Source of the DNA: Macrostomum lignano
Lineage: Eukaryota
Assembly: GCA_002269645.1 (NCBI GenBank)
Contig: NIVC01001281.1
Coordinates: 231,302-295,301, forward strand
DNA length: 64,000 bases
Direction of reading: 5' to 3'
Part shown: positions 33,261-56,177 of the stretch, one piece after another
How the letters are laid out: every line of letters begins with the position of its first letter
How positions within the stretch are numbered: position 1 is the first letter of the stretch
Made by a program: the position numbers and the translations under genes
Notes under the pieces: generated by a model
Seen by the model: only the letters and a program-made list of their open reading frames with translations
What the model was told of the DNA's origin: nothing
Database searches by the model: none

Positions 33261-34477
33261 CGAGCGGGGCACTAAAAAAGTTCTGAGCCTCGGTGTGAAA
33301 GAGAGAATTGGAGTAAATGTAGTCAGCTTTTTTCTACATAGTCTCCCTTGACCAAGAAGCACTTGTGACATCTTGATCGCAGTGCTTCGATGCCGCTCTG
33401 AAAGAACTGCTTTGAACACCCCTCGAACCAGGAGGTCGCAGCATCCCTCAGTGCCTCATCAGTGTCAAATCGCTGCCCACGGAGCGCCCGCTTGAGATGC
33501 TGAAACAGGTGAAAGTCGCTGGGGGCAAGGTCTGGTGAATAGGCTGGGTGCAGCAGCTCTCGGTACCCTGCAACACTGACAGCTGCCTTTGCCAGCCCAC
33601 TGGTGTGGGCAGGTGCAGCAGCACCACACCACGGCTCAGCATTCCCCGCCGATTCTCCTTGATTGCCTCACAACGGCAGTAGCACAACTTCCAGCAGCAG
33701 TGGGCCTTTGGCATCCCAAAAGATGGTGAGCATTATCTTGCCTGCACAGCATCCAGACCGTGCCTTCAGTGGTGCAGGTGCACCAACTGGCAGCCACTGC
33801 TTCGACTCCTCCTTTGACTCGGGATCATGGTGGTGGTGGATCCATGTCTCATCACCGGTCACGCAGCAGAACAGGAAGCCGGCAGGATCTGGATCGGAAG
33901 TTTGCAGGACAAGCTTCGCATACTGCAACCGCGCGGACTTCTGCTCGCTTGTCAAGATTCGCGGGATCCACCGGGCCGATGCCTTCGACAGATGAAGATG
34001 CTGGTGCAGGATCTCGATGACCTGTGGGTCAGAGAGCCCGCTTTCCGTGTCTGCCACAGGTTCCCTGACCTTTACTCGCCGGTCGCCATCAACCAGGGCC
34101 GCGCTGGAGGCGCTGGATGTTGTCAGCAGTGACAGCAGTCCGAGGGCGTCCGAATCGAGGGTCATCTTCGAGAGAGTCGCGGCCACGCTTGAACTCGTCT
34201 GCCCAACGCGTATGAGGGGGCAGCCCCAGCATGCACGGCGCCATGCGACTTTGGATTTCAGCAGGTTTTGAGCCCTCCAGGGTCAGGAATTTGATCACTG
34301 CCCTGTTCTCAATTTTCAGTTCTTGAGAATTTGCTATAGGTCCATGTAGAACTTAAGTAATGCCTATAGAGAGCTGAAAAGACTATAATTAACATACATG
34401 TATTATTGTGTTAGAGCATCGAGTTTCAGCGCTTTGTGGCATGGGATCTTGGTCGAACTTTTTTAGTGCCCAGCTCG
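33261..34477 (-). mobile_element. Degenerate mariner transposon
   Basis: TIRs CGAGCGGGGCACTAAAAAAGTTC / GAACTTTTTTAGTGCCCAGCTCG flanked by TA. Frameshifted transposase fragments VIKFL, DDPRFGRP, ARWIPRIL, VTGDETWIHH, MLTIFWD. Confidence 0.9.
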
Positions 34478-36574: not shown

Positions 36575-37883
36575 CGAGGGATACTCTAAAAGTTTTGCAA
36601 TTCAACTATTTAAAGTTAATTTTGCCAAACTTTTCTATTACAATCCTTCAAAGTAGGCTTCCCGGAACTGCAAACACTTGTGCGCTTGTCCGAGCCACTT
36701 GTTCATCAAGCCCTGGAAGTCTTCAATTGGGATGCCATCAATCGCCTCCTTTGCCGCCTGCTCTAGCTCCTCGTCAAACTGAAACCTGCACCCCCTAAGC
36801 GACTTTTTGATTTCTAGAAAGAGCCAAAAGTTGCAGGGGGCGAGGTCTGGTGAGTAGGCCGGGTGTGGTAACATTGAAATGCCCTCTTGGTTCAGGAACA
36901 CTCGAGTTGCAGCAGCCGTGTGGGCGGGGGCGTTGTCATGGTGAAGCTTCCGCCCTCGCATTCCCATCCTTGGTGCCCTCTGGGTCACGTTGTCGATCAT
37001 GACTGGCAAGCACTCTTCAGTGTACCATCGAGCAGTGACTGTAGCTTGACCCTCCTGCTTCACCATTGCCACCACGCATTGTCAGTCGAAGAAGATGGCA
37101 AACATCCGCTTGCCCTGGGACTGGGACCGCGTTGCTTTCAGGGGTCGTTGACCACCTTCCGGCACCCACTCTGCACTGCTGCGCTTTGTCTCGATGTCAA
37201 AATGATAGAGAAACGTCTCATCACCAGTGATGACCTCAGAGCGGCGCTGAAGGCTCCCATGCTCATATCGATTGATGAGAAACTGACAGAACTCCATGCG
37301 GGCCTGTTTCTGAGCATCTGTCAGGATGTGGGGTATCCATCGGGCACAAAGCTTCCTGACTCTCAGGTGATTGTGTAGAATCGTATTGACCACTGCCAAT
37401 CCAATGCCGACATTCATAGCTAGCATGTCCGTGGTGATTCGCGGATCCTAATGAATCAGCTCCTGCACTGCAGCAATGTTTTCCTCTGTCACTGCTGTCG
37501 GAGGTCTTCCGGGCCAGGGGTCGTCAGAAAAGCTAGTCCTGCCGGCCTGGAACTCGCGGTACCAGCGTGTAACCATAGCATATGACGGCGCTTGAGCCTC
37601 CAATGTTGCTAGTAGCTCGGCATGAGTCTCAAGCGCCGTGAGCTTTCGCTTATGGCAGTACCAAATTAGTAGCCGATTCTGCTCACGATTCAATTCCATG
37701 GCTGCAGCTGTACAATTAAGGAGTCTCTGACTTTGACTGGGGGCTGAGCAGGCGTATATGTATTGAATTCACTTGAAAATTGAGGTGGGGACTATGTACA
37801 TGTTTATTGTACAGAGAGTTGGTTTTGAAGATTGTGCAACTTGCGCAAGTGGTTGAATTGCAAAACTTTTGGAGTATCCCTCG
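36575..37883 (-). mobile_element. Full-length mariner (DD34D type) with inactivated transposase
   Basis: 32-bp TIRs CGAGGGATACTC(T/C)AAAAGTTTTGCAATTCAAC with TA TSD. Single frame 37699-36638 with stops at 37448-37450 and 37082-37084. WIPHIL, ITGDET, HHDNAPAH, YSPDLAPCN (third Asp reads Asn). Confidence 0.95.
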
Positions 37884-52046: not shown

Positions 52047-52262
52047 GCTCATCAGTTTACTGAGGCCTTGGCAACTGCAGTGAGCTTGAGTCATCAGTTT
52101 ACTGAGGCCTTGGCAACTGCAGTGAGCTTGAGTCATCAGTTTACTGAGGCCTTGGCAACTGCAGTGAGCTTGAGTCATCAGTTTACTGAGGCCTTGGCAA
52201 CTGCAGTGAGCTTGAGTCATCAGTTTACTGAGGCCTTGGCAACTGCAGTGAGCTTGAGTCAG
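52047..52262. repeat. 42-bp repeat, about 5 copies
   Basis: CATCAGTTTACTGAGGCCTTGGCAACTGCAGTGAGCTTGAGT. Confidence 0.9.
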
Positions 52263-52415
52263 CTACGCAGAAATTGAAATGAGCAAGCTCCAAGACAATA
52301 GACATTATTCGGCAACTTAGAAAACAAGGCAAGATTTGCGCATAAAGTACTTTATTGAATCCAGCTGGCCTTCGAACAAACTGACAAAGGATTTGTCAAG
52401 TAAAGCCAATAGTTC

Positions 52416-52887
52416 TCAGTAGCACTGGCCGTACCGGTTGGAGGCATTGATGGGCAGGCAGTAGCCCGAGCAGCACTGCCTGAAGCTCACGCACAGGTGG
52501 CCTTTGGCCAGGCAGGCCGCCTCCGCTACCGAGCTCTGCCCTGCCAGCACTGCAGGGGCGGGTTGGGAATGGCGGTTACTGCTGCATCTGAGCCCTCACT
52601 GACAGTCTCTGCACTCCATCTGAGCCCTCACTGGCAGTCCCTGCACTGCATCTGAGCCCTCACTGACAGTCCCTGCACTGCATCTGAGCCCTCACTGACA
52701 GTCCCTGCACTGCATCTGAGCCCTCACTGACAGTCCCTGCACTGCATCTGAGCCCTCACTGACAGTCACTGCTGCCTCCGGAGCTGCCCCTGGACCAGGC
52801 CATCTCAGTCAGCATAGGAAGTGACTCACCGTAGAGCAGAGTAACTATGAGCAGCAAAAGCAAAGTCTGCAACCGAGGTTGAGCCAT
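52416..52887 (-). CDS. Secreted cystine-knot (ICK/knottin) peptide 1, 63 aa
   Basis: Exon 52887-52830 (signal peptide, G|GTGAG) plus exon 52549-52416 gives MAQPRLQTLLLLLIVTLLYVLAGQSSVAEAACLAKGHLCVSFRQCCSGYCLPINASNRYGQCY*. Pattern C-x6-C-x5-CC-x3-C-x11-C. Minus-strand AATAAA at 52351-52356. Confidence 0.82.
52590..52770. repeat. 32-bp repeat (knottin 1 intron)
   Basis: TGCATCTGAGCCCTCACTGACAGTCCCTGCAC. Confidence 0.88.
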
Positions 52888-52959
52888 GGGTGAAGCTGTG
52901 CCGATCCAAGTCTTCGGTCCGGTGTTGGGGCAATTGTTACTGAAGTAGCAAGGGAGGGT

Positions 52960-52975
52960 GTATTGAGCTCAATAC
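52960..52975. promoter_or_regulatory. Perfect 16-bp palindrome in the 210-bp spacer between the divergent knottin genes
   Basis: GTATTGAGCTCAATAC is its own reverse complement; a regulatory role is inferred only. Confidence 0.35.
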
Positions 52976-53097
52976 GTCCGCAGACCTCATGCAAACGTCT
53001 ATGGCCCAGACCTAAATGCATTCCTGTGTAAAATGTAGTTCAAGTTTGAATATCAGCTTCGAGTTTGGTCAAGTGTCTGCTCAGAACAGCTGCCAAA

Positions 53098-53354
53098 ATG
53101 GTTTCCCATTTGAGCACAGTTATTATTGTGCTCGCAATGATTCTGTTTTTCGGTGAGTCAGTTAATTTGTGCATTGTGAATTTTCTGCATACGTGACGGC
53201 TGTTGGAGCTTCCCAGTGCTCTTCTCCATTAGGCTACGACGCGGTAAACAACTGCTGGCTGGTCGGTGAGCACTGCTCGGATGGCAACCAGTGCTGCTCA
53301 CACCAGTGCTACTCAAGCAATGACAGGTTCGGTCCTCTCGGACTCTGCCTCTGA
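53098..53354 (+). CDS. Secreted cystine-knot (ICK/knottin) peptide 2, 58 aa
   Basis: Exon 53098-53152 (G|GTGAG) plus exon 53233-53354 gives MVSHLSTVIIVLAMILFFGYDAVNNCWLVGEHCSDGNQCCSHQCYSSNDRFGPLGLCL*. Pattern C-x6-C-x5-CC-x3-C-x12-C. AATAAA at 53406 and 53432. Confidence 0.8.
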
Positions 53355-53699
53355 GTTGGTAGTACAGCCTGTGCTCACTTTTCACAATGCGATTTTTACT
53401 TAGCAAATAAACCTAAAGGTACTTATTTTTCAATAAACATTTATTCAGATACTCTTTAGTCTTATCCATGCCACGTTTTGCTCAATATTTCGCTTTGATC
53501 CATGGTCTTCGCCAGCTAGACACTGATTGCTAATTTATCAATTCTGGGAGTGCAGGTGACAATGTGCTATTGTTGAGTCATCAGGGGTCTGTGATGTGAA
53601 TACGGATGTCAGGGTGGGCTACAGTTGAGTCAGCAGGTGTCAGGGCTACTGATGAGTCAGCAGATGTCAGGGTGGGCTGTCGTTGCGACAGCAGGTGTC

Positions 53700-54175
53700 A
53701 GAGTGTGCTATTGTTGAGTCTGAGAGTGCAGGTGTCAGCTAGGGTGGGCTATTGTTGAGTCTGAGAGTGCAGGTGTCAGCTAGGGTGGGCTATTGTTGAG
53801 TCTGAGAGTGCAGGTGTCAGCTAGGGTGGGCTATTGTTGAGTCTGAGAGTGCAGGTGTCAGCTAGGGTGGGCTATTGTTGAGTCTGAGAGTGCAGGTGTC
53901 AGCTAGGGTGGGCTATTGTTGAGTCTGAGAGTGCAGGTGTCAGCTAGGGTGGGCTATTGTTGAGTCTGAGAGTGCAGGTGTCAGCTAGGGTGGGCTATTG
54001 TTGAGTCTGAGAGTGCAGGTGTCAGCTAGGGTGGGCTATTGTTGAGTCTGAGAGTGCAGGTGTCAGCTAGGGTGGGCTATTGTTGAGTCTGAGAGTGCAG
54101 GTGTCAGCTAGGGTGGGCTATTGTTGAGTCTGAGAGTGCAGGTGTCAGCTAGGGTGGGCTACTGTTGAGTCAGCA
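53700..54175. repeat. 41-bp minisatellite
   Basis: GCTAGGGTGGGCTATTGTTGAGTCTGAGAGTGCAGGTGTCA tandem. Confidence 0.93.
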
Positions 54176-55039: not shown

Positions 55040-56070
55040 CAAACTACCCCGAGGAGTCCCTGCTGTTCTCTTGACTGATTCGGGGGAATCCCTGCTGTTC
55101 TCTTGACTGATCCGGGGGAATCCCTGCTGGTTCTCTTGACTGATCCGGGGGAATCCCTGCTGGTTCTCTTGACCGATCCAGGGGAATCCCTGCTGGTTCT
55201 CTTGACTGATCCGGGGGAATCCCTGCTGGTTCTCTTGACTGATCCGGGGGAATCCCTGCTGGTTCTCTTGACCGATCCAGGGGAATCCCTGCTGTTCTCT
55301 TGACCGATCCGGGGGAATCCCTGCTGTTCTCTTGACCGATCCGGGAGAATCTCTGCTGTTCTCTTTACCAATCTGGAGGAATCCCTGCTGTTCTCTTGAC
55401 TGATCCGGGGGAATCACTGCTGTTCTCTTTACCAATCTGGGGGAATCCCTGCTGGTTCTCTTGACTGATCCGGGGGAATCCCTGCTGTTCTCTTTACCAA
55501 TCTGGGGGAATCCCTGCTGGTTCTCTTGACTGATCCGTGGGAATCCCTGCTGTTCTCTTTACCAATCCGGGGGAATCCCTGCTGATTCTCTTAACTGATC
55601 CCGGGGGAATCCCTGCTGGTTCTCTTGACTGATCCGGGGGAATCCCTGCTGGTTCTCTTGACTGATCCGGGAGAATCCCTGCTGGTTCTCTTGACCGATC
55701 CGGGGGAATCCCTGCTGGTTCTCTTGACTGATCCCGGGAGAATCCCTGCTGGTTCTCTTGACTGATCCGGGAAAATCCCTGCTGTTCTCTTGACTGATCC
55801 GGGGGAATCCCTGCTGTTCTCTTGACTGATCCGGGGGAATCCCTGCTGTTCTCTTGACTGATCCGGGGGAATCCCTGCTGTTCTCTTGACTGATCCGGGG
55901 AATCCCTGCTGTTCTCTTGACTGGGAATCCCTGCTGTTCTCTTGACTGGGAATCCCTGCTGTTCTCTTGACTGGGAATCCCTGCTGTTCTCTTGACTGAT
56001 CCGGGGGAATCCCTGCTGTTCTCTTGACTGATCCGGGGGAATCCCTGCTGTTCTCTTGACTAATCCGGGG
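55040..56070. repeat. 32-33-bp minisatellite
   Basis: TGACTGATCCGGGGGAATCCCTGCTG(G)TTCTCT tandem. Confidence 0.93.
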
Positions 56071-56177
56071 GAATTGAGAGACGAAAATACAAAAAATGTT
56101 TCAGTAGAGAACAGAAAAACCAACGCCAGTTACTTTTTATTACAACACAGTTTGATCCAAGCGCACAGATCCGAGTG

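Follow-up and report, generated by a model that had tools for sequence, protein, structure and literature searches.

A head-to-head pair of genes for probably secreted six-cysteine peptides with a knottin framework in the flatworm Macrostomum lignano

We analysed a 64-kb stretch (the window) of contig NIVC01001281.1 from the genome assembly of the flatworm Macrostomum lignano (GCA_002269645.1); all coordinates below are window positions. Between 52200 and 53600, the window carries two small genes arranged head-to-head, gene 1 on the minus strand and gene 2 on the plus strand, each encoding a short precursor with a predicted signal peptide followed by a six-cysteine domain of knottin framework. 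Both genes are real and transcribed, and both have already been deposited as hypothetical proteins. It is highly probable that they are expressed as a pair of secreted six-cysteine peptides. The best explanation overall, to which we assign a probability of about 0.65, is that they form a paralogous divergent pair of secreted, disulfide-stabilised effector peptides.

Structure of the gene pair

An earlier note on this DNA had described two divergent two-exon genes with start codons 210 nt apart. In each, a hydrophobic, signal-like first exon ended G/GTGAG in phase 1 (a slash marks an exon–intron boundary), a second exon carried the framework C-x6-C-x5-CC-x3-C-x11/12-C, and an AATAAA signal followed. 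We read both strands from 52200 to 53600 and rebuilt the coding sequences (CDS) by script. Every structural detail was borne out, including the junctions 52830/52549 and 53152/53233, which are exact. The features of the two genes are:

52887-52885, minus strand: start codon of gene 1, read from the sequence
52830..52887, minus strand: coding part of gene 1 exon 1 (58 nt), MAQPRLQTLLLLLIVTLLY plus the G of the split codon, predicted signal peptide; donor CTACG/GTGAGT
52550..52829, minus strand: gene 1 intron, phase 1, 280 nt, GTGAGT...CAG; acceptor CCCCTGCAG/
52582-52772: 32-bp minisatellite in six copies within the gene 1 intron, from the repeat scan
52416..52549, minus strand: gene 1 exon 2, with the end of the signal/pro region, the six-cysteine domain and the TGA stop; spliced product identical to PAA69907.1
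52351..52356, minus strand: gene 1 polyadenylation signal AATAAA, 60 nt downstream of exon 2; kept in all three genomic copies in an alignment of the 3' untranslated regions
53098..53152, plus strand: coding part of gene 2 exon 1 (55 nt, ATG at 53098), MVSHLSTVIIVLAMILFF plus the G of the split codon, predicted signal peptide; donor TTTCG/GTGAGT
53153..53232, plus strand: gene 2 intron, phase 1, 80 nt, GTGAGT...TAG; acceptor CCATTAG/
53233..53354, plus strand: gene 2 exon 2, with the six-cysteine domain and the TGA stop; 98% identical to BOX15_Mlig014797g1
53406-53411 and 53432-53437, plus strand: two gene 2 polyadenylation signals AATAAA, both kept in the three copies

The spliced product of gene 1 is MAQPRLQTLLLLLIVTLLYVLAGQSSVAEAACLAKGHLCVSFRQCCSGYCLPINASNRYGQCY (63 amino acids) and that of gene 2 is MVSHLSTVIIVLAMILFFGYDAVNNCWLVGEHCSDGNQCCSHQCYSSNDRFGPLGLCL (58 amino acids). 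The cysteine core of gene 1, C-LAKGHL-C-VSFRQ-CC-SGY-C-LPINASNRYGQ-C-Y, follows the pattern C-x6-C-x5-CC-x3-C-x11-C and carries an N-A-S sequon in its last loop. The core of gene 2, C-WLVGEH-C-SDGNQ-CC-SHQ-C-YSSNDRFGPLGL-C-L, follows C-x6-C-x5-CC-x3-C-x12-C. Each precursor has a hydrophobic core of 11 residues, with a mean Kyte-Doolittle value of 3.08 in gene 1 and 3.53 in gene 2, where it extends up to the exon boundary. Candidate (-3,-1) signal-peptidase sites in gene 1 are VLA/G, LAG/Q and AEA/A (the slash here marking the cleavage position). The predicted mature peptides are both of ~4.3 kDa, basic for gene 1 (isoelectric point 8.3, charge about +2) and acidic for gene 2 (isoelectric point 4.6, charge about -3).

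To compare the framework with chance expectation, we counted its strict form, C-x6-C-x5-CC-x3-C-x11/12-C, in the six-frame translation of the window. There were two occurrences, against none in 200 dinucleotide-preserving shuffles; a loose version of the pattern had a shuffle mean of 0.12. The remaining loose-pattern matches in the window fall in minisatellite translations or in GC-rich, off-frame open reading frames (ORFs). A chance origin of the framework pair is excluded.

Transcript support and annotation

The 63-residue product of gene 1 is identical to PAA69907.1, 'hypothetical protein BOX15_Mlig017616g3 [Macrostomum lignano]', and has the near-identical copies g4 (PAA79588.1) and g1 (PAA90518.1); UniRef labels the g4 sister copy, A0A1I8IQJ6, a 'UPF0506 domain-containing protein'. 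The exact gene 2 product is absent from the protein collection searched, where the closest entry is 'BOX15_Mlig014797g1, partial' (98% identical). The pair had been thought to look unannotated. For gene 1 this does not stand, its product being an exact GenBank entry at the locus; for gene 2 it stands on NIVC01001281.1 only, the gene being called at two sister loci. On NIVC01001281.1 only gene 1 of the pair is called, and the intact gene 2 copy at 53098-53354 (plus strand) is uncalled; this seems to be a gap in the annotation and not the sign of a pseudogene.

The GenBank annotation of M. lignano was built exclusively from RNA-seq and transcript assemblies (StringTie, TACO and de novo) with TransDecoder ORFs (PMC5730564). 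Since the BOX15 models are derived from transcripts only, the gene 1 junction is transcript-supported at this locus, and the gene 2 junction at two sister loci whose splice sites are the same. Spliced transcripts, on which the earlier note had made its claim depend, are thus represented: the BOX15 models use exactly these junctions.

Four further M. lignano entries, present only in UniRef/MetaClust, consist of gene 1 fused to what seem to be off-frame or antisense translations of neighbouring DNA: A0A1I8JS09 (P0007), A0A1I8JPX7 (P0008), A0A1I8F5U2 (P0013) and A0A1I8FPS2 (P0005). They look like chimeric artefacts, likely from older gene models. The names carried by such chimeric entries, e.g. 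'SMB domain-containing protein' and 'Beta-galactosidase', are misleading.

Three genomic copies of the pair

We compared three loci of the assembly: L001 (NIVC01000108.1), L002 (NIVC01000625.1) and L003 (NIVC01001281.1), the last being 100% identical to the window. At L001 and L002 both genes are called, head-to-head. The layout is shared by all three copies, as are the 210 bp between the ATGs, the donors and acceptors of both genes and the polyadenylation signals; both genes are intact in each copy, and the same short-chain dehydrogenase (SDR) gene adjoins the pair in 3/3 loci. The gene 2 intron is 80 nt in every copy, with 0-2 substitutions between copies. The gene 1 intron is 248, 280 or 536 nt long because the copy number of its 32-bp minisatellite varies, leaving the splice sites untouched.

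Across the three copies, neither cysteine-rich domain changes in amino acid sequence, and every non-synonymous difference falls within the signal/pro part: gene 1 shows L21M, A22S and V27A, gene 2 V11L and F18L. Divergence between the copies is only ~2-4%, non-coding DNA included. In the M. lignano assembly, duplicated blocks of >=95% identity add up to ~180 Mb (PMC5730564), and the three loci are redundant or homeologous copies of the kind expected in this neopolyploid.

Origin of the two genes

Gene 1 and gene 2 are 30% identical by BLASTP (E=4e-5). Conserved in the alignment are the six cysteines, the glycine of loop 1, QCCS and a small number of loop residues, and the intron has the same position and phase in both. 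A trace of inversion lies around the first splice site:

52819..52853 and 53129-53163: inverted repeat of 35 nt, 74% complementary, over the exon 1 end and splice donor of both genes, from sequence comparison

Taken together, the residual identity, the matching introns and the inverted repeat indicate an old inverted duplication, which is the simplest account of the pair as paralogues. That the scaffold has survived such divergence is the strongest reason at hand for considering both genes functional.

A probable compact bidirectional promoter

The interval between the two start codons contains the following:

52888..53097: ATG-to-ATG interval of 210 bp, with both 5' untranslated regions and the putative shared bidirectional promoter; spacing equal in the three loci
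52960..52975: perfect 16-bp palindrome GTATTGAGCTCAATAC; L002 retains its 12-bp core ATTGAGCTCAAT but has other letters at the outer positions
53029..53034, plus strand: TATA-like TAAAAT, ~22-27 nt upstream of the minimal transcript start of gene 2 (53056); TAAAAT in the window and L001, TAATAT in L002

The genes lie on opposite strands, start less than 1 kb apart and have no gene between them, as a divergent pair should. At the sister loci, transcript-derived 'partial' CDS with a 5' extension begin 54 nt before the start codon in gene 1 and 42-45 nt before it in gene 2. The transcript starts are therefore at most 114 bp apart, and the untranscribed core can span at most 52942-53055. A shared, compact bidirectional promoter is thus structurally well supported, and with the transcript 5' ends this close, a single promoter of <=114 bp probably drives both genes in the same cells. 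Both elements listed above lie in this core: the palindrome may be bound by a dimeric transcription factor, and the TAAAAT may, by its position, be a promoter element of gene 2.

Fold and family assignment

The loops between successive cysteines are of 6, 5, 0, 3 and 11 residues in gene 1 and of 6, 5, 0, 3 and 12 residues in gene 2, within the knottin range of the KNOTTIN database. The earlier assignment of the framework to the knottin, or inhibitor cystine knot (ICK), type holds as far as these loop lengths go. For the named families (O-superfamily conotoxins, UPF0506, spider toxins), none of the curated thresholds is reached.

The best or near-best Pfam match of the gene 1 mature domain is UPF0506 (PF11703), at 17.2 bits (16.0 for the precursor and 16.8 for the sister copy P0002) against a gathering cut-off of 23.2, and it covers only profile positions 33-54 of 59. 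Other scores for gene 1 are 16.8 bits for Conotoxin, 16.3 for Toxin_29, 14.8 for Toxin_18 and 17.2 for AtDEF-like (full precursor). Against the O-superfamily conotoxin models (PF02950/PF08087) the scores are 15-17 bits, with cut-offs of 24.3-25.1; the Conotoxin match spans positions 44-70 of 75, i.e. the mature end, and leaves the conserved signal/pro region unmatched. Gene 2 has a single Pfam match, in which the signal region of its precursor hits a transmembrane family by chance (E=0.32). Relatives found with the profile described below match Conotoxin, UPF0506, Toxin_29, Omega-toxin and Toxin_18 simultaneously, and insect, fungal and metagenomic knottins are among them. Since the Pfam knottin models cross-react in this way, the 17-bit UPF0506 score is not family-specific. 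We considered and rejected gene 1 as a UPF0506 member, the score being sub-threshold and the model cross-reacting with unrelated knottins. Both peptides are of knottin framework, and membership of a named family is not established.

A sequence search of the PDB gave weak knottin matches only (bidentatide, U3-scytotoxins, a trypsin inhibitor, a venom polypeptide, spiderine and DkTx). AlphaFold2 models of the single mature sequences had a mean confidence (pLDDT, predicted local distance difference test) of 72 for gene 1, with a beta-hairpin and a pro-region helix, and of 64 for gene 2, with three short strands. With Foldseek, the gene 2 model had 13 matches (E 1.9-8.1), of which 11 are ICK peptides (among them asteropsins, mu-agatoxin, Hc3a, Magi3, DkTx and ACTX-Hi:OB4219) at a template modelling score of about 0.5 and a root-mean-square deviation of 2-3 A. 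A search of BFVD with the low-confidence gene 2 model only gave four matches, all at E >=1.1 and none named as a baculovirus conotoxin-like (CTL) peptide. An ICK fold is likely for the pair.

Relatives in other organisms

We built a profile of the two mature domains and ran an exhaustive HMMER search against 1.84 billion representatives, which returned 24 matches at E <=0.001. The M. lignano matches are the pair itself and the chimeric older gene models. Those from elsewhere are dipteran multi-knottin 'phenoloxidase-inhibitor-like' proteins, Microplitis proteins, a fungal protein, bacterial repeat proteins and unnamed metagenomic peptides; the best of them (Corethrella U5EN92, Anopheles XP_049530314 and others) have E values of 1e-12 to 1e-6. 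The pair-profile search gave no match from other flatworms and, beyond generic knottin similarity, none outside M. lignano.

In some metagenomic peptides the likeness to gene 1 goes further than the cysteines: P0028 reads ...AACLMDGSICVSPSECCSHRCL...YGVC, and P0023 has two domains ending ...RYGTC and ...YYGTC. Their sources are L004 (ENA ERZ23366319, a 539-bp contig) and L005/L006 (ENA ERZ23498389, Logan SRR16631311). As orthologues P0028 and P0023 were rejected, both being intronless ORFs on short metagenome contigs.

UPF0506 has been reported mainly from parasitic flatworms. It has been described as a knottin fold in Schistosoma and seen in the secretome of Schistocephalus (PMC8400842); a upf0506 gene is a parenchyma marker in the S. 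mansoni atlas. Our literature search turned up no paper linking M. lignano with knottins and nothing specific on knottins in Macrostomum or flatworms.

Genomic context

The neighbours confirmed by Pfam are XRN1, a DNA ligase with zf-PARP, a P450, a pirin, a GNAT acetyltransferase, a D-Tyr-tRNA deacylase and an SDR; Rfam finds no RNA family in the 64-kb window. Minisatellite arrays are very dense and give rise to many long spurious ORFs; their units measure 20-44 bp, and the copies are as much as 100% identical. Arrays flank the pair at 52049-52261, 53703-54171 and 55053-56074, and others lie e.g. at 20.3-22 kb, 29.2-33.1 kb and 43-44.5 kb. Two minus-strand ORFs (33668-34186 and 36638-37426) appear by eye to be remnants of mariner/Tc1-type transposases, an unverified impression; 36638-37075 has no Pfam match at E <=1e-5. 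The window is ordinary M. lignano gene space.

Function and alternative explanations

If the pair does encode secreted effectors, the signal-like peptide of exon 1 would direct each precursor into the endoplasmic reticulum and be removed there. The exon 2 domain (~33-40 residues) would then form three disulfides, most probably with the knottin connectivity I-IV, II-V and III-VI, to give a protease-resistant secreted peptide of ~4.3 kDa. On this model, the invariant scaffold C-x3-G-x2-C-x5-CCS-x2-C carries a long and variable last loop that would bind the target. The peptides might act as extracellular effectors at the body surface, in the gut or in a gland, in defence or in the modulation of enzymes or receptors. 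We consider a defensive role in particular possible, and put it forward tentatively.

Several observations weigh against this account. No curated Pfam threshold is reached (15-17 bits for gene 1, where 23-25 are needed); gene 2 matches no cysteine-rich Pfam family, its mature domain matches none at all, and P0006, like gene 2, has no UPF0506 match. The AlphaFold models are single-sequence models of only moderate (72) or low (64) confidence, the Foldseek search of the gene 1 model against the PDB gave no match, and all those of the gene 2 model have E>1. A VI/VII framework can, by analogy with the conotoxin TxVIIB, adopt a fold other than the ICK. Gene 2 has no canonical (-3,-1) signal-peptidase site directly after its hydrophobic core, FFG/YD having Phe at -3 (FLG/YD in the sister copies), so its cleavage may be atypical or lie further downstream. 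With the copies only ~2-4% apart, the identity of their mature domains is compatible with purifying selection and is not proof of it. Finally, we found no tissue, proteomic or co-expression data for Mlig017616/Mlig014797 in the literature. A full-text search for the gene IDs returned nothing, and the IDs are absent from the supplements of PMC5816591, PMC5946080, PMC12896417, PMC7336406 and PMC5977470, as far as these possibly incomplete texts go; the same holds for the peptide and nucleotide strings of both genes in the supplement of PMC5977470. The literature search for an M. lignano cell atlas turned up none.

The main rival keeps the secreted peptides and gives them a reproductive or egg-related role, either as prostate or seminal-fluid products or as knottin-type inhibitors of phenoloxidase/tyrosinase in eggshell tanning. 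Flatworm eggshells are tanned by tyrosinases, and the best non-Macrostomum profile matches are named 'phenoloxidase inhibitor' by their sources and share the C-x3-G-x2-C-x5-CCS-x2-C core. Two papers also fit: a targeted in-situ screen identified putative seminal fluid proteins of M. lignano (PMC5977470), and genes related to reproduction are rapidly evolving in Macrostomum (PMC7336406). The dipteran scores, however, sum over 4-6 repeated domains in proteins of multi-domain architecture with a last loop of x6, and neither the gene IDs nor the sequence strings occur in the supplements of the seminal-fluid screen and the reproduction RNA-seq paper, as far as these possibly incomplete texts go. 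We regard a reproductive role as unlikely overall. Still less probable is a more specific and more far-reaching scheme, in which the old basic and acidic duo, co-expressed from a promoter of about 114 bp and working together, would give a free-living flatworm its first ICK-type effector system, whether as a two-component secreted effector, as an effector with its neutralising partner or as a knottin inhibitor of the eggshell-tanning tyrosinase/phenoloxidase.

Other readings dispute the fold, the use or the function itself. The peptides could be secreted and six-cysteine without being knottins, folding as a mini-granulin or another disulfide isomer. TxVIIB is the precedent, with a VI/VII framework but a mini-granulin fold and disulfides mis-assigned by AlphaFold (PMC11035057), and the model confidence of only 64-72, with no significant structural match, leaves room for it. 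The loops of 6, 5, 0, 3 and 11/12 with a glycine in loop 1 are nonetheless typical of knottins, the weak sequence matches are all to knottin families and 11/13 of the weak gene 2 fold matches are ICK peptides, so we doubt that the fold is a different one. Neurotoxins like those of cone snails or spiders, blocking ion channels and delivered to prey or in defence, would explain the framework similarity and the sub-threshold Conotoxin, Toxin_18 and Toxin_29 matches. None of these matches reaches its threshold, and that to Conotoxin is limited to the mature end (44-70 of 75). M. lignano grazes on diatoms, which makes a predatory venom unlikely; the animal is also not known to have a venom apparatus. 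Non-venomous animals, too, have knottin-like peptides of a similar kind, e.g. mussel CRP-I (PMC10138031), and we consider the neurotoxin reading highly improbable. Just as little can be said for loci that are transcribed and functionless, i.e. decaying or neutral small ORFs. Such loci would fit the lineage restriction (beyond generic knottin similarity, no relative was found outside M. lignano) and copies too alike to demonstrate purifying selection. At 30% identity, though, the paralogues still have in common the six cysteines with their spacing, the loop 1 glycine, QCCS, a signal peptide, the phase of the intron, its splice sites and the polyadenylation signals, and each gene is intact in all three of its copies.

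Invertebrate genomes commonly encode small cysteine-rich secreted peptides, and the finding is otherwise an ordinary one. Should the pair turn out to be true knottins whose target can be defined, a free-living flatworm would join the animals known for this scaffold, and a transgenic model organism would offer a lineage-restricted secreted effector pair. M. lignano transgenesis could make direct use of the 210-bp interval, a candidate bidirectional, cell-type-specific promoter of very small size. For annotation, gene 2 is missing from that of NIVC01001281.1, and several older UniProt/WormBase models at the locus are chimeric.

Comparison with known systems

With the O-superfamily conotoxins the pair shares the VI/VII framework and a precursor of signal plus mature peptide; unlike them, it scores below threshold, leaves the signal/pro region of the profile unmatched and comes from a non-venomous flatworm. 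The likeness to UPF0506 consists of the weak match of the gene 1 mature domain and the label on A0A1I8IQJ6, whereas gene 1 stays under the cut-off and gene 2 has no match. The dipteran 'phenoloxidase inhibitor-like' proteins have the same C-x3-G-x2-C-x5-CCS-x2-C core, but in 4-6 tandem domains where the pair has one, with a last loop of x6 instead of x11/12 and scores that add up over the repeats; there is no sign of orthology. Solved knottins show no significant match to the pair in sequence or structure. The features held in common with the knottin/ICK class as a whole are the six cysteines in C-C-CC-C-C order, a glycine at the fourth position of loop 1 and a small, probably secreted precursor with a predicted signal peptide. 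An analogy, by framework and not by sequence, can be drawn with CRP-I of Mytilus, likewise small secreted knottin-framework peptides, of unresolved role, in a non-venomous lophotrochozoan (PMC10138031).

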